Shown here in pieces: positions 162 to 61,411 of a stretch of 64,000 nt of DNA (position 1 is the first letter of the stretch; each line of letters begins with the position of its first letter). Origin of the DNA: Haliotis rufescens (taxonomy: Eukaryota); assembly GCF_023055435.1 (NCBI RefSeq), contig NW_025964013.1, positions 2,976,001 to 3,040,000 on the forward strand, read 5' to 3'. The notes under the pieces were generated by a model, which worked only from the letters and a program-made list of their open reading frames with translations, had not been told where the DNA came from and ran no database searches. The translations under genes were made by a program, and so were the position numbers.

Positions 162-284
162 TTCCAACTTGTTGCTCTTGCATCCGACACCACGAAGCAG
201 ACAGTCCTGACAGGAACCCAAAGCCCAGGCAATTGGATCACAGGACATTGTCATAACAAGATCGTGGTGCAGGTTGCAGCCTAA
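162..284 (+). CDS. Terminal exon (exon 4) of an upstream paralog of the secreted His-rich/two-Cys family (gene begins before window)
   Basis: Acceptor ttttgtttag|TTC; translates FQLVALASDTTKQTVLTGTQSPGNWITGHCHNKIVVQVAA*, near-identical to exon 4 of genes A/B; AATAAA at 331-336. Confidence 0.85.
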   Translation, partial: FQLVALASDTTKQTVLTGTQSPGNWITGHCHNKIVVQVAA

Positions 285-526
285 TGCATCACATATATAT
301 GTTATGTGTGGTTGTTTTATGCCATTCATCAATAAATAAGTTCTTCCTTAACTTCGAATGGTTACATAGTTACCATTACATAATCTCTTCAACTGAATTT
401 CCTACTTGTTGTTTTAACAAAGTTTATATGAACTAAGTTCGTACAATTTGTCCAGCGTTTTAGACATATTATCGGGGATGTCATTCTTCCTTTCAACTTT
501 TGCCTGATTACAATATCAAAGCCTTA

Positions 527-865
527 AGCCCCTATCTCACATTCACGAATCTGATGACGAATGAACACGATTAAACGCGCACTCATTCGTGTTCATTCGT
601 GTTAAGTCGTGGTCGGTCGCGCGCGGTCGTATGGACGTTGCAGCTCGGCTTAAATTGCAAAAATTTATAACACGATTTAAGCCGAGCTGAAAAGTCGTGT
701 TCAGTCGTATGAAGGTCGTATGAGGGTCGTATGAGGATCGTATGAAGGTCGTGTTTGGTTAAGAAATTTGTATAACCACAAGGTCGAGCACGAATTAACA
801 CGATTTTTCAACTTTTCTCAAATCGTGTTCGCAATTTCTTAAACCGTGCATGTGAGATAGGGGCT
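527..865. mobile_element. PIF/Harbinger-type (Tourist-like) MITE
   Basis: Perfect 16-bp TIR agcccctatctcacat, TTA target duplication (524-526, 866-868), absent from the paralogous flank near 8570. Confidence 0.8.
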
Positions 866-56420: not shown

Positions 56421-56893
56421 CATTCTCACCAAGGACAACGCAGAGCAAGAAATACCTATTTCAAGTGAAGAACGCAAATATTCGGAAGTTATTTGTCAAC
56501 TATATTTGATATGTCATTCCCCTTGGTTTCATACAGATTGGCTGCAGATGAAATCACAGAAACATTTCTGTTGCCAAAAAGTGGGATTGAAACTTGCAAA
56601 GATACATAAGTGTATCAGTGAATATTAAGTGTGTTAATGTTTACTTTATATATATGAAATGATATGATTAGTCAGACTAGAATAATAATTTGTGCAAATT
56701 CTCTCCATGACATATTTTACATTCCATTTCTTCAACTTAGCCTAGTTTTCCCTCTTATCATTGAGAATAATGCTACCATGTCCATCTGCTAAACTTGTTT
56801 TGTCGCCCTTATCTTTAGTGGAACATACCCTAACGACATAAAAAGACCTATTTTTGTCAATTCAGCTCACGTAGTTGAACAGACGTTGTCAAG

Positions 56894-59800
56894 ATGAACT
56901 CTCTTATTGTCATTGCTTCTCTGGTGGTGCTGTGTGTCGTGCAGGTAGGACGATGACCCTATGAGCTGATCATGATCACATATGCCTCAGTTTTTAACAA
57001 TTATTGTCATGTCTTTAGATGGCATTCAGACGTGATACACATAAGAGGGAGAATTTATGGATGGTGAACTTCTTTATTATGAGGAAAAACAACGTTTATG
57101 CTTACTCCTTCATCGGGTGATGAAAGTTGTGTTCCGATTAATAGAGAAGTTGACATCCATAAATTCTCTCCCTTAATTATCATGTGTATGGACGTTTGTG
57201 TGTAAATAATGCAGATCTAAATAACTTAAATACATAAGTAATCGCATGAAGTGAATGACAAAAAGTCACAACTTGTATGCTAACTTTTTTATTAAGATCA
57301 ATACAATCTCTGCCAATATTAAGCACAGCTTATAGATCCTTTTTATCGTTATGCGATACCCGCTTCGTGATGTTTCCCCTTACAAAATGGACGTATTCGA
57401 AAACCTCACGGTCACGATAACGAATCCCTGTGAGTCAACCATTAAGACGGATAAGATCTGTCCTGCCAACACAATGATGCTGCGTTAGAACCCCCAGTGT
57501 TCATATAAATCTTAGTGTAGATATAGACACTAGCGGTTGCAACTGCAACCATTACTATTCATATAACTCTTAGTGTACATATAGACACTACGGTTGCAAC
57601 TGCATCCCCTTGTGTTCATATAACCCTTAGTGTATATATAGACACTAACGGTTGCAACTGCAACGCCTAGTGTTCATCGTGCATATAAACCTCAGTGTAC
57701 ATATAGACACTAACGGTTGCAACTGCATCCACTAGTGTTCATATAACCCTTAGTGTACATGTACATATGAACACTAACGGTTGCAACTGCATCCCCTTGT
57801 GTTCATATAACCCTTAGTTTATATATAGACGCTAACGGTTGCAACTGCAACGCCTAGTGTTCATCGTGCATATAAACCTCAGTGTACATATAGACACTAA
57901 CGGTGGCAACTGCGTCCCCTAGTGTTCATATAACCCTTAGTGTACATATGAACACTAACGGTTGCAACTGCATTCCAAAGTGTTCATATAAACCTTAGTG
58001 TACATATAGACACTAACGGTTGCAACTGCATCCCCTAGTGTTTATATAACCCTTAGTGAGTGAGTGAGTGAGTATGGTTTTACGCCGCTTTTAGCAATAT
58101 TCCAGCAATATCACGGCGGGGGACACCAGAAATCGGCTTCACACTTTGTACCCATGTCGGAAATCGAACCTGGGTCTTCGGCGTGACGAGCGAACGCTTT
58201 AACCACCAGGCTACCCGACCGCCCCTATAACCCTTAGTGTACATATGGACACCAACGGTTGCAACTGCATCCCCTAAAGTTCAATTCTTGAAAGTTACAC
58301 AAAGGGTGTCTTTGTGTAACTATTCACACTAACTGTTGCAGGAACTGGGTGAGGTTTTGGGATGAGTGTTTGTGGGTTCGTAAGTGAGTGGGAGTGTGGC
58401 TGTTGATGGGAAAGCGGGTGGAAGGCGGAAGGTGGTTTGGGGCTATGGTTTATGAGGGAGGCGGTTAGGGGAGTGGGGTTGTTAGCGTTAAAGGTGTGTG
58501 GGGTTTCGTGTGCACGTAGGTTATGTGAAAGAATTTGTGCTTATATATTTCCTTGAGAACGGGCTGCTTTAATTTTTTCAATGTATCTGTCCTCTCATGA
58601 TTCCTTATGGCCGCCGCTTTTTTTTTGTCAATAGTTTCGTGATGCAACGGATCCTAGCATTAAAACTTTGTGTACCATATGTGTAAACCATCAAGTCGGA
58701 TTGATTCATTTTGGGCTAAAGATCTAAGTCACTAAAAAGCTTTCAGTATGGCATTTAAGGAAACTTTTAGTGACTCTTATATGTGAGTCCTAATTGCTTG
58801 AAATTTGTTTAGTTCCTATATCTCAGAGAAAAATGTCATTGACATGAAAAGTAGGTCACCTTGAACAACATTACATGCTCCAGCTGTGTAAGTGTGTCAA
58901 AGTTGATAATTGCTACAACTTAAATTAATCATTATTCCTTAAACGTTCATACACTACACAAACACTACCTACTACATGAGGATTGCACTTAAATTGTTAC
59001 AACGTTGATCAGAGGTCAAAGTCACGGGTTATATAATACTTATACTTAAATTCCTTTTAAACCTTATATTCATAGAGACACTGTTTGGATAATTGGCATA
59101 TTTGGCCTGTAAGTAAAGGTTTAAGGTTAATTAGGTTTATGTATATTAGCACTCAAGGTCAAGGTCACTAGATGGCTTTCTCTTTGGCATATGACATTTG
59201 CTGTAATATTTGTAATTATTGTGCTAGAATGATGAAACTTGGTAAGTACATGTATCTTAGTAAACTCATTGATATGAAAAGAAAGTAATCTTGCATTAAG
59301 TTTCATGATATGTGTCTATGCTAATATATATGTTTTTTGTTTGTTTGGCTGTTGTTTAACGCCGCATTTAACCATATTCCGGCTATATGAAGGCGGTCAG
59401 ACAATAATCAAGTCTGGATCAGACAATCCAGTGATTGGGCATCGATCCATGCAATTGAGATACGATGGCATGCACCACCAAAGTCACCTGATGCCTTTAG
59501 TCGCCTCTTACGGCATGTATGGGTGACTGAAGACCTATTCTCTACCCCGAATCACCACGGTTCTAATACAATGTAGTACCAGTTAGATCAAAGTTCGAAC
59601 ATCAGCCTATCAAGTTTCAAGTAAGTGTTCATAACACCAATGTATCATAACATCTCTTTGCGTTGTACCATGTGGGTAATAAACATATACGTGTGAAAAT
59701 AGTGTTATGTGACTTTTTGTTTGCAGGCGCAAGATGCGGCAACGACTGCGAAGGTCCATCACCACAGTCACCACTCGCATGCCGCCCACGCCCACACCAC

Positions 59801-61411
59801 ACACGAGCCCAAGGAGACAGAGCACTACTCGTTTACCTATGATGGGAAGACTGTAAGTACAAGTTGTGAGTGAGTGAGTTGGGTTTACCACCGTTTAAAC
59901 AGTATTTTAGTTGTCTTGGGGCATATCAGCTTAATGTGGGAGATGAATACCAAGATAAGGCCGAATCTGATAGAAAAGGGCGACGTCATGTTTGTTTGCA
60001 AACACTGATAGTTGTACCTACCTATTTTTTTAGATTTAAATCTTCATCCGTATATGGCCCCAACGGATACCGATTTTATCCGCTGGATTTATCTTGCCAT
60101 GACACCTACCCATTATATAACAAATATCATTTGCACCCCTCACACTTAATGGTGAAAAAGAAATACCATGCTACACCGAGTTTGTTAACATGTCGTTATT
60201 ATTATTTGTCACACGACGTCGTTCATAATTTGACCATAGAGTTGAACAAGGGTACTTTGTTTTGTTTTGGCAGCATGACATGGTTGTGAAGACAGGACAC
60301 CAGTGCTATATTATGCCATTGACAGACAAACAGAGAGGCATGGTCCACGACCCTGCACAGATCAAGAAAGTCGAGGTAATCCCGAAAGTCGTAATCCTCA
60401 CAAAATAGACGTGATTCGCAAACGTTTGGTAAGAGGTACGAATAATGGACAATAATCCGTTAATATCCGTTTTAATAGTATACGATTTCTTGATCATTGT
60501 TTAGAGGGGTAGTGATTAACAGCCAAATGTTCTTTGAACAGTACAATACCTCATGGTATGTGCACATGTGGGTTATCGAACCTTGATTGTTAAACACTCA
60601 CTCATCTTCTCATGATGAAACATGCATATCTGGACATATTCGCGTTTTGATGGACAGCGTGCATGGATCATTCGCCTTGTTCTATTAAACCTGTTTGGTG
60701 AACGATTATGTCGGTTGGTTGTGTTTTATGCTGATTATCCTATTAAAGTGGAGTGTTGTGTTATATAGAGAATCTCACCCGAGTGTCTTTTGATATCAAA
60801 TATATCAACACGAGTTGATGAAAGTGGGAAAACTCCGAGGCTTGCCGAGGATTTTTTTCCACTTTTATCAACGAGTGTTGATATATTTGATATCAAAAGA
60901 CACGAGGGTGAGATTTTATTTATCATCCAACATCATTCTTCCAACTTTTTCAGTTTGTAGAAAGTTATAAGCAGTGTCTGAAGTGTTTAAAGTACTGCTA
61001 ACAGCTTCAGTAGCACAGCCATTAGTGATGTCATTTGATTGTGACGTCATTGGTCTGCAAAACATTGTGATGCAATGTCATTGCAGCGATATCTACAGTA
61101 TAGATATCGCTTGATCTCACCCAAACGACATCTTTTTGGGAGCCAGTTTTGGATGATAAATGTAGGCTGCTTGTTGGGACATTAAGGCTGCTTGACGGGA
61201 CATTAAGGCTGCTCGTTGTGCTATATACTGCTTATGACATTAAGGCTTGCTGTTGTGGTTATATTGGCCGTCCTTTATGTTATAGGCTGCGGCTCTCAAG
61301 CTGATCATCGACAACACTGTCCAGAGCGCTGTTGACCAGTCTGTTCTTGACCACCATCTTGCACATTTTTGCAAAGGCTCCACCACGATCACCATGCTCG
61401 CCAACAATTAA
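56894..61411 (+). CDS. Gene E: paralog of D, 134 aa; join(56894..56944,59727..59852,60274..60375,61286..61411)
   Basis: MNSLIVIASLVVLCVVQ / AQDAATTAKVHHHSHHSHAAHAHTTHEPKETEHYSFTYDGKT / HDMVVKTGHQCYIMPLTDKQRGMVHDPAQIKKVE / AAALKLIIDNTVQSAVDQSVLDHHLAHFCKGSTTITMLANN*; AATAAA 61489. Confidence 0.9.
57042..57174. repeat. Short inverted repeat / hairpin element
   Basis: gggagaatttatggatg ... catccataaattctctccc. Confidence 0.55.
57490..58280. repeat. ~57-65-bp minisatellite interrupted by a SINE
   Basis: ccttagtgtacatatagacactaacggttgcaactgcatcccctagtgttcatataa units. Confidence 0.9.
58059..58225 (-). mobile_element. SINE family 4 copy
   Basis: 14-bp TSD tataacccttagtg. Confidence 0.85.
60734..61160 (-). 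mobile_element. Non-autonomous Crypton derivative with a long terminal palindrome, in gene E intron 3
   Basis: Ends match both ends of the 49572-51434 element; ~145-bp palindrome at 60771-60915. Confidence 0.7.

Follow-up and report, generated by a model that had tools for sequence, protein, structure and literature searches.

What protein family is encoded by a series of short, similarly spliced exons in the red abalone, Haliotis rufescens, and what its secreted products might do, are the questions raised by the stretch of DNA analyzed here, a window of 64,000 nucleotides on one contig (C235:2976001-3040000). The initial annotation of this window described a hidden tandem cluster of at least six genes. 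The cluster is real, but the number has to be raised: when the 1.33-Gb genome was searched with a 34-position profile of exon 3, 10 sites were recovered with E values from 6e-21 to 2e-16, all inside C235:2936393-3046584, and the first match beyond these ten copies reached an E value of only 0.89. This gap rules out chance as the source of the cluster pattern. The 10 copies found genome-wide are all intact and form a single 112-kb cluster, and the same profile search detected no intron-less copy. Hence, the cluster consists of ten paralogous genes that arose by tandem expansion, and the window covers its middle. Five complete four-exon genes (A to E) and the terminal exon of gene U lie within the window on the plus strand, exactly where the initial annotation had placed them; outside of it, the cluster comprises four genes on the upstream side, one of which is in minus orientation, and a single gene on the downstream side. 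The phase-0 introns and the 102-nt exon 3 that had been reported likewise hold in every gene model, and the introns of all ten genes are of the GT-AG type and in phase 0.

The annotated part of the window begins with the first base of gene U exon 4 (162-284; RefSeq LOC124136764), a terminal exon that includes the stop codon; exons 1-3 of this gene are found 1.4-2.5 kb upstream of the window, and its full model corresponds to P0026, except that the RefSeq N-terminus is 9 aa longer. In gene A (LOC124136843), a TATAAA element is positioned 61 nt upstream of exon 1 (5109-5153), which provides the start codon and the signal peptide. Exon 2 (6099-6230) contributes the end of the signal peptide, a His-rich arm and the beginning of the conserved domain with its FxYD motif, exon 3 (6494-6595; 102 nt) the core of the domain with M, CY, LSD, HDP and E, and exon 4 (8199-8321) the second Cys and the stop codon, with AATAAA following 37 nt past the latter; the complete model is identical to P0047. 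The first exon of gene B (13321-13365), together with its promoter region, shares 87% identity with its gene A counterpart; it is followed by exon 2 (13973-14122) with a longer His-rich arm, by the 102-nt exon 3 (14552-14653; profile score 84.7 bits) and by exon 4 (18419-18541). The third intron of gene B (3765 nt) contains a Tc1/mariner-type ORF, and the cluster region is altogether rich in transposons and satellites.

Gene C consists of exon 1 (21139-21219, as in RefSeq LOC124136842), exon 2 (24683-24826), in which a Ser/Thr/Ala-rich, mucin-like arm replaces the His-rich one, the 102-nt exon 3 (25298-25399) and exon 4 (26362-26484). With these first two exons the model equals RefSeq XP_046358844 (P0019) letter for letter. 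An alternative acceptor for exon 2 at 24653, probably the one chosen in the initial annotation, is not used in this model, and intron 1 of gene C as initially proposed is probably wrong. A second in-frame ATG at 21175 would yield a 15-aa signal-peptide exon as in the other genes, and the H. rubra orthologue (P0004) begins at this second ATG. Gene D (LOC124136761; exons at 43136-43186, 46441-46566, 47046-47147 and 48089-48214) and gene E (LOC124136760; 56894-56944, 59727-59852, 60274-60375 and 61286-61411, the last base being the end of the stop codon) both encode a His-rich arm in exon 2 and possess the 102-nt exon 3; their complete models are identical to P0018 and P0015, respectively.

Six of the models are letter-identical to RefSeq entries named 'uncharacterized protein' (LOC1241367xx/1368xx), as is that of gene C once revised, and RefSeq carries nine of the ten cluster genes of H. 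rufescens under this name. The genes are thus hidden only from an ORF track, which indeed misses them. Each comprises four exons, a TATA-type promoter and an mRNA of about 550 nt that encodes a precursor of 125-149 aa. AATAAA occurs 36-82 nt past every stop codon, an exact TATAAA precedes the ATG by about 60 nt in gene A and in G1 and G2, two cluster genes outside the window, and inspection by eye revealed a TATA-like (C/A)ATAAAA in several of the others.

That these genes are real is, in our assessment, virtually certain. The direct RNA evidence obtained here concerns only gene A, all three introns of which are spliced out as exact joints in RNA contigs from four runs of four different studies, so that the junctions proposed initially for this gene are confirmed: the joint 5153|6099 is present in runs X5 and X6, the joint 6230|6494 in all four runs, and the joint 6595|8199 in X1, X6 and X13. 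The depth over the gene A exons runs in the thousands (maximum 5536) versus about 15 in the introns. Moreover, the dN/dS ratios of nine paralogue pairs range from 0.2 to 0.5, and the family is hence under purifying selection. One might suspect repeats, pseudogenes or chance open frames in a region so replete with transposons and satellites. Such an artefact is refuted by the exact splicing of gene A in four studies, by the intactness of all ten copies with their canonical splice sites, and by the dN/dS values; conservation of the family across Gastropoda and Bivalvia speaks against it as well, and we regard it as extremely improbable.

The sequences bear out the architecture proposed initially for the encoded proteins, in which a signal peptide precedes a variable arm of low complexity and a conserved domain with two Cys residues. 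Their predicted signal peptides display a hydrophobic core of 10-12 residues ahead of AQA|Q, AEA|Q or VQA|Q, motifs in agreement with the -3/-1 rule. Cleavage of a signal peptide of 16-18 residues should accordingly occur after AQA, AEA or VQA, at a site spanning the exon 1/2 junction, and would leave a mature protein of 12-14 kDa with a predicted pI of 6.2-7.0 and Gln at its N-terminus. The N-terminal arm, 26-46 residues long and in all likelihood disordered, would contain 19-32% His in HxH/THxxH repeats, except in gene C, whose arm is Ser/Thr/Ala-rich. The putative C-terminal domain of about 80 residues would reach the end of the protein, which lies 10-12 residues beyond the second Cys. Exactly two Cys residues, spaced 52-53 residues apart, are present in the mature proteins, and the motifs M, CY, L[S/T]D, HDP, the E closing exon 3 and the single C-terminal Cys are conserved as described, with FxYD now to be read as FxY[D/E]. 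In the family sequences, the arm is not separated from the domain by any dibasic or furin site; the sole dibasic pair, KK, occurs in D, E and F and lies inside the domain. The grouping into three subfamilies (A/B/upstream copy; C; D/E) is upheld as well, and G1/G2 form an additional subgroup.

The conserved domain is probably a compact, diverged BRICHOS domain. AF2 models from two subfamilies (about 33% identical) reached pLDDT values above 90 for the domain, with elements in the order E-E-E-H-H-E-H-E. The BRICHOS fold consists of antiparallel strands beta1-4, a variable alpha1, a short alpha2 and a final beta5 (Willander 2012, summarized in PMC9714404), and both models display it, though with structural Z-scores below 8 and with no strand predicted at the position of beta1; an additional strand that separates alpha1 from alpha2 matches beta4' of non-SP-C BRICHOS domains. 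Among 48,161 PDB representatives, the BRICHOS domain of proSP-C (2yad) ranked first for both models (Z 5.8 over 67 and Z 6.2 over 69 of 77 residues, each with an rmsd of 2.8 Å), Z values around 6 that fall under the level of about 8 at which the search tool warns of common arrangements. A BRICHOS trimer (8ox2) was third for both models, and re-alignment left BRICHOS as three of the four top entries.

Highly conserved in BRICHOS domains are an Asp ending beta2 and two disulfide-bonded Cys residues, one in beta4 and the other in alpha2 (PMC9714404). In the AF2 model, the D of FxYD closes strand 51-56, C70 lies within strand 69-74, and C122 immediately follows helix 116-121; the succession of the predicted elements, as well as the location of the Asp and of both Cys residues, agrees with the BRICHOS description (PMC9714404). 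The Asp is invariant save for a Glu in gene U and in clams, and both Cys residues are invariant in 23-26 sequences; outside the three BRICHOS signature positions, no polar or Cys residue is invariant. Support of moderate strength exists for a BRICHOS reading in which the acid of FxY[D/E] lies at the end of beta2, the Cys of CY in beta4, and the second Cys at the end of the short alpha2 ahead of the last strand. The predicted signal peptide is in keeping with the N-terminal signal peptide or membrane anchor of BRICHOS proteins.

The same fold might have been reached by convergence, and the domain would then be a mollusc-specific alpha/beta fold in a new secreted family without known kin. We consider this unlikely, although several observations favor it. 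Among 23 full-length family members, none of those from abalone gave a Pfam match, to the BRICHOS profile PF04089 or any other, nor did any single exon, and the family profile found no BRICHOS chain in the PDB by sequence; Foldseek placed 2yad at ranks two and three with a TM-score of 0.54 by target length but an E value of about 0.9, an unrelated DUF1488 protein scored Z 4.9-5.5, and hhalign, run against one canonical BRICHOS exon of abalone, brought no more than 12 columns into alignment (probability 23%). Against convergence stand the first rank of BRICHOS among all chains for two such divergent models, the position of every BRICHOS entry within the top four, and the coincidence of the invariant residues with the signature. 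Furthermore, two oyster members match PF04089, their only Pfam match, over nearly its full length, P0006 with E 1.4e-3 and 19.3 bits (profile positions 23-85 of 91) and P0027 with E 0.12 and 13 bits (positions 4-85), both below the gathering cut-off of 25 bits. The nearest named ESM-Atlas clusters of both subfamilies are uniformly BRICHOS (0.84-0.85), scores that serve as leads only since they stay under 0.9. The initial annotation had recognized no named gene and stated that a strong match to a characterized family would remove the novelty; this is now partly the case, as the domain is most likely a diverged BRICHOS, though its kinship is visible only at the superfamily level and under the Pfam threshold. 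Collectively, we lean toward a real family of secreted proteins equipped with a BRICHOS-type domain.

This family is not lineage-restricted because homologues exist in clams and oysters: it was found in four Haliotis species, where H. cracherodii possesses 1:1 orthologues with 88-97% identity, and in Mercenaria, Ruditapes, Crassostrea/Magallana and Ostrea. Of the lineage-expanded system envisaged originally, the tandem expansion therefore remains, but the family is not confined to abalone. With the BRICHOS superfamily (PF04089; proSP-C, ITM2/Bri2, gastrokines, chondromodulin/tenomodulin, OAF) the abalone proteins share the predicted secretory route with an N-terminal signal sequence, the alpha/beta domain and the conserved acid ending beta2, and the predicted places of their two Cys residues would correspond to beta4 and alpha2. 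They differ in a domain of only about 80 residues that reaches the C-terminus, in an N-terminal, His-rich variable segment, in the lack of a convertase site and of a C-terminal beta-prone or amyloidogenic client peptide, and in a sequence similarity under the Pfam cut-off. ProSP-C, the best structural match, also carries its non-BRICHOS 'cargo' N-terminal to the domain, but there it is a transmembrane poly-Val helix, whereas the abalone arm is hydrophilic, His-rich, disordered, and preceded by a cleavable signal peptide.

Analogy with proSP-C, whose BRICHOS domain acts on the N-terminal SP-C, makes it conceivable that the abalone domain chaperones the arm and that the arm is released to act, in the manner of a histatin, as an antimicrobial peptide dependent on metal. 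Invertebrate BRICHOS proteins include known antimicrobial-peptide precursors (PMC9714404), and the tandem expansion, the variable arms and the very abundant gene A mRNA in some samples would fit host defense. The annelid precursors (arenicin, alvinellacin, capitellacin, nicomicin) are likewise lophotrochozoan secreted proproteins with a lineage-specific variable part; their peptides, however, are C-terminal, cationic, Cys-rich, disulfide-bonded hairpins freed at a furin-type site, and the abalone proteins have neither a C-terminal extension nor a processing site between arm and domain. Their arms are not cationic, given the near-neutral pI of the mature proteins and the Asp/Glu residues in the arms, that of gene C is mucin-like, and the dN/dS values give no sign of diversifying selection; we thus deem a role as peptide precursors improbable. 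His-rich secreted proteins, such as those of the squid beak, serve hard or sticky biomaterials in other molluscs and annelids. With this precedent, a pattern that the small size of the abalone proteins, their tandem expansion and their high expression would fit, they might be structural or regulatory parts of shell matrix, radula/jaw or pedal adhesive, in which His-metal coordination by the arm would cross-link and BRICHOS would maintain solubility before assembly. But a His-rich or BRICHOS protein of this type is not mentioned in the main text of either of two papers on abalone shell proteomes, the arms are short and devoid of Gly/Tyr/DOPA-type motifs, and one is mucin-like, so that this role, too, appears rather improbable. 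For none of the roles suggested initially (metal-binding mucus, adhesive, biomineral or defense) did the analysis turn up support from tissues or proteomes.

The role that we tentatively propose combines a chaperone with a metal- or pH-responsive arm. Since no dibasic or furin site is present, the proteins are predicted to be secreted whole. Their BRICHOS module might then operate as a disulfide-stabilized, ATP-independent anti-aggregation chaperone, and the His-rich arm, whose binding near neutral pH would depend on metal (Zn/Cu/Ni) or on pH, would target or switch it in a fluid, mucus or matrix outside the cell. Repeats of the HxH type, placed in a disordered part of a secreted protein, also occur in histatins, squid beak HBPs and His-rich byssal domains and render metal or pH responsiveness plausible; there is no homology to these proteins, and the abalone arms differ from them in being short and near-neutral and in their attachment to a folded domain. 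As a functional and architectural analogy only, the gastrokines (GKN1-3) appear closest: they are small and secreted, combine a signal peptide with BRICHOS, lack a membrane anchor and occur as tandem paralogues, as in abalone, and reach very high abundance in one epithelium. They differ by their larger size (about 180 aa), by a C-terminal extension past BRICHOS and by the lack of a His-rich arm; sequence searches detected no similarity to the abalone family, and the sole link is a language-model neighborhood of 0.85 to a gastrokine-2 cluster. If the proposed role is true, the abalone proteins would be functional analogues of the vertebrate gastrokines rather than peptide precursors.

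A motif scan of the plus strand of the window detected five 34-codon segments carrying the HDP motif, each with an FxYD segment just 5' of it. From a comparison of the window with itself and the reading of splice sites, we built models of genes A to E, which proved to be complete four-exon genes, and a further terminal exon, a homologue of exon 4 in genes A and B, was found to begin exactly at position 162. Hence, the five four-exon genes and the additional terminal exon reported in the initial annotation are present, with position 162 representing the first base of this terminal exon and position 61411 the stop codon of gene E. 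All introns of genes A to E are of the GT..AG type, possess a pyrimidine tract before the acceptor and lie in phase 0, and exon 3 comprises exactly 102 nt in each gene; both the intron phase and the exon length had been proposed before, and they hold in all models.

The RefSeq protein of gene C equals the translation of 21139-21219, 24683-24826, 25298-25399 and 26362-26481, and a model with exon 1 at 21175-21213 and exon 2 starting from 24653 was replaced by this RefSeq-identical one. The acceptor at 24653 is probably wrong, because the RefSeq protein matches exon 2 from 24683. The H. rubra orthologue of gene C begins at the second ATG, equivalent to 21175. A 60-nt unit, repeated 6.2 times with 98% matches (47721-48093), abuts the exon 4 acceptor of gene D exactly, and every copy holds the acceptor and the first bases of exon 4. 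Each unit also contains a stop codon in the frame of exon 4; use of an upstream acceptor would therefore truncate the gene D protein before its second Cys. The RefSeq model uses the last of these repeated acceptors. Intron 3 of gene B (3.8 kb) is much longer than that of gene A, because it contains an intact 341-aa open frame (14930-15955), judged by eye to resemble a Tc1/mariner transposase.

A profile built from the exon 3 peptides of the five genes, searched against the entire 1.33-Gb assembly from which the window derives, yielded ten matches (E 6e-21 to 2e-16), all of them on contig C235 between 2,936,393 and 3,046,584; the next best match had an E-value of 0.89. We fetched the flanking regions and modeled the other five copies by coordinates. 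All ten genes are intact, with four exons and canonical splice sites, and follow each other in the order G1, G2, G3, U, A, B, C, D, E and F; nine are encoded on the plus strand, and G1, at the upstream end, is inverted. The previous count of at least six genes is thereby enlarged to ten. Half of the gene family sits beyond the window: G1 (minus strand), G2, G3 and exons 1-3 of gene U, whose terminal exon opens the window, are located upstream (C235, 2935932-2976000), and F is located downstream (C235, 3040001-3047606). G1 and G2 form an inverted pair, 93% identical, with the longest His-rich arms (the variable N-terminal segments) of the family. A tblastn search of the 144-kb region with all ten proteins found no further domain exons and matched only His/Thr-like microsatellites; pseudogene fragments of exon 3 or exon 4 are therefore absent from the region. 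An AATAAA motif follows the stop codon of every gene at a distance of 36-82 nt. An exact TATAAA is present about 60 nt before the ATG of G1, G2 and A, and TATA-like (C/A)ATAAAA sequences were recognized by eye at the same place in several other genes.

Other elements are interspersed with the cluster. An orphan first exon of the C type, together with its upstream region, is located at 3640-3705 between genes U and A. Relative to 21139-21219 its core is about 75-80% identical (77% mean column identity over 218 columns); both ATGs are kept, and the donor used by RefSeq in gene C is destroyed. This exon probably remains from a C-type gene that has been lost. An element of about 160 nt occurs in three copies (95-97% identical) downstream of gene C (26054-26215), downstream of gene D (48623-48784) and within intron 1 of gene E (58061-58222), and resembles a young SINE-like repeat. 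The minus strand between genes D and E carries open-frame fragments (51365-54009) that by eye resemble a LINE-type reverse transcriptase/endonuclease. Large tandem-repeat or satellite arrays (30335-32326, 6871-7659, 11909-12641, 39437-40412, 55918-56448 and 62412-63993) have several open frames on each strand and give rise to the longest "ORFs" of the window. No array is part of the gene family, and two of the arrays lie where the GC skew spikes, at 12-14 kb and 30-32 kb.

The genes had been described as hidden. This is true for the ORF track, which misses them, but they are already present in RefSeq as "uncharacterized protein" entries. Our models of G1, G2, A, D, E and F (six models) are letter-identical to RefSeq proteins of H. 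rufescens, and those of G3 and U differ solely in the ATG chosen by RefSeq, 27 nt upstream. A HMMER search with a ten-sequence exon 3 profile against 1.84 billion representatives matched full-length RefSeq entries of the same designation from several mollusks: the abalones Haliotis cracherodii, H. rubra, H. asinina and H. rufescens, the clams Mercenaria mercenaria (three consecutive LOC numbers) and Ruditapes philippinarum, and the oysters Crassostrea/Magallana angulata, Crassostrea/Magallana gigas and Ostrea edulis. Literature searches with LOC and UniProt identifiers, or with Haliotis combined with BRICHOS or histidine-rich, retrieved no paper on this family.

The initial annotation had proposed RNA reads as a check on the predicted junctions. 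For gene A (4800-8700), the gene covered by our RNA comparison, we inspected Logan contigs from four runs of four different studies (X1, X5, X6 and X13), and spliced joints were found among them for all three introns, each of the GT..AG type and at the predicted bases. The joint 5153/6099 is present in X5 (depth 3603) and X6, the joint 6230/6494 in all four runs (depths 4268, 3603, 4.5 and 95), and the joint 6595/8199 in X1 (depth 5536), X6 and X13; in X13, a single contig of 783 nt joins exons 2, 3 and 4. The runs are labeled merely "RNA?"; the spliced form cannot derive from DNA, because the genome holds no intron-less copy. Intron depth amounts to about 5-16, and the resulting ratio of spliced to intron sequence is several hundred to one, contig depth not being a proper measure of expression. 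At least two samples contain abundant mRNA of gene A.

The precursors begin with a hydrophobic core of 10-12 residues, which in our reading of the sequences is followed by AQA/Q, AEA/Q or VQA/Q; the predicted signal-peptidase site likely straddles the junction of exons 1 and 2 and leaves an N-terminal Gln. The mature proteins have calculated masses of 12-14 kDa and pI values of 6.2-7.0, and lack a dibasic site between the arm and the domain and, except for gene C with one, any N-glycosylation sequon. In agreement with the proposed two-Cys architecture, they hold exactly two Cys residues, and 10-12 residues extend beyond the second. The arms comprise 26-46 residues with 19-32% His and HxH/THxxH repeats; that of gene C consists of 61% Ser/Thr/Pro/Ala and 8% His. 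AlphaFold2 (AF2) assigned pLDDT values below 50 to all arms.

By eye, the domain pattern FxYD...CY(L/I/V)M.L...C resembles the BRICHOS signature of proSP-C and ITM2. Pfam searches found no match in single exons and no BRICHOS domain in any abalone protein, and the BRICHOS family PF04089 was the sole family matched by the oyster members: P0006 aligns to profile positions 23-85 of 91 (19.3 bits, E 1.4e-3) and P0027 to positions 4-85 (13 bits), both under the 25-bit cut-off. Weak matches below the cut-off to other families, among them TPR_PEP5_VPS11 (8 members) and DUF5023, were attributed to low-complexity or helix noise and discarded. A search of PDB sequences with the family profile found no BRICHOS chain; the matches consisted solely of T-cell-receptor alpha chains at E of at least 0.15 and are spurious. 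The sole six-frame PF04089 match in the genome (25.5 bits) is an exon on the minus strand of contig C34 (411736-411843), reading "...SCYVMKLNRSLIAPPRDVIDLINKL", an ITM2-like "CYVMKL" exon, and looks like part of a canonical ITM2/Bri-type BRICHOS gene of abalone; hhalign aligned the family with this single exon over 12 columns at a probability of 23%, too little to be informative.

AF2, supplied with family alignments, modeled the domain confidently in two proteins sharing about 33% identity, P0015 (gene E) and P0022 (orthologue of gene A from H. cracherodii). When both models were aligned to 48,161 PDB representatives without Foldseek, the proSP-C BRICHOS structure 2yad ranked first for each (Z 5.8, rmsd 2.8 Å, 67/77 residues, and Z 6.2, rmsd 2.8 Å, 69/77 residues), and the BRICHOS trimer 8ox2 ranked third for each. 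A DUF1488 protein reached Z 4.9-5.5, and all remaining representatives had Z of 3.7 or less. Foldseek placed 2yad second and third, at E 0.9, and on re-examination three of the top four entries in its list were BRICHOS. The ESM-Atlas neighbors of both domains were all BRICHOS clusters (proSP-C-like, gastrokine-2 and OAF; 0.84-0.85), which we regard as a lead only. Mapped onto a published description of the BRICHOS fold (PMC9714404), the Asp of the models ends a predicted strand that precedes two further antiparallel strands, as described there, and the first Cys would reside inside the equivalent of beta4. Next come a long predicted helix and an extra short strand, which corresponds to beta4' of non-SP-C BRICHOS domains; the short helix alpha2 would be closed by the second Cys, and the last strand would end the protein. 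Since these independent lines agree, although each is sub-threshold, we consider homology of the domain to BRICHOS likely. The initial interpretation was partly right. The family, already annotated yet uncharacterized, is best described as a diverged, client-less BRICHOS variant with a His-rich arm.

In a maximum-likelihood tree, genes A, C, D, E, F and U show well-supported 1:1 orthology between H. rufescens and H. cracherodii. Haliotis-wide clades of the D/E/F type and of the C type are well supported, and a clade of A/B/G3/U with G1/G2 is also Haliotis-wide, at weaker support (94/89); the expansions are therefore older than the abalone species sampled. The placement of the bivalve sequences has weak support (82/48) and carries a long-branch warning. 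The family is older than the gastropods. The lineage expansion previously suggested applies to the tandem arrays, which are lineage-specific, but not to the family itself, which with homologues in clams and oysters is no abalone invention. For nine paralogue pairs, dN/dS values are 0.2-0.5 in arm and domain alike; the family sequences are conserved and under purifying selection.

In contrast to known BRICHOS proteins, the abalone family has neither a convertase site nor a C-terminal client, and its domain has about 80 residues instead of the usual 100 or so. As in proSP-C, the variable part lies N-terminal of the domain, but here it is hydrophilic and His-rich. Gastrokines, small secreted BRICHOS proteins whose genes lie in tandem and whose abundance is high in one epithelium, provide the closest functional analogy. 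Two other roles have to be weighed. A function as precursors of antimicrobial peptides is distinctly improbable, as a cleavage site is absent, the arms are near-neutral and diversifying selection is absent; a role as a biomaterial, for which we found no supporting report in the literature, merits equally little credence. For the BRICHOS variant that we favor, the most plausible mechanism would be that the whole protein is secreted, that its domain, with one predicted disulfide, would act as an ATP-independent anti-aggregation module, and that the arm would switch its charge and metal binding near neutral pH. The swap of the His-rich arm for a mucin-like one in gene C points to the domain as the constant working part and to the arm as the element that governs where or when the module acts.

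Taken to its full extent, this reading would make the family the first stand-alone extracellular BRICHOS chaperones with a built-in His-rich arm switchable by metal or pH, an ancient conchiferan family of abalones, clams and oysters with the smallest natural BRICHOS domain, about 80 residues, and no client peptide in cis; we regard this comprehensive proposal as rather unlikely. No new kind of system is revealed, and the genes are already in the public annotation. A client-less, His-armed version would nevertheless widen the known architectures of the BRICHOS superfamily, and an entire lophotrochozoan branch escapes the BRICHOS model of Pfam. As natural anti-amyloid chaperones, BRICHOS domains are the subject of research; for such work, a highly abundant, client-less BRICHOS of 80 residues with a His-rich arm would represent a compact natural scaffold. 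Some ten abalone genes and the homologues in bivalves, hitherto labeled "uncharacterized," gain a fold and a family as well as a testable role; if the proposal is true, secreted matrix, mucus or shell proteins, for example, would be kept unaggregated until a pH or metal cue arrives.
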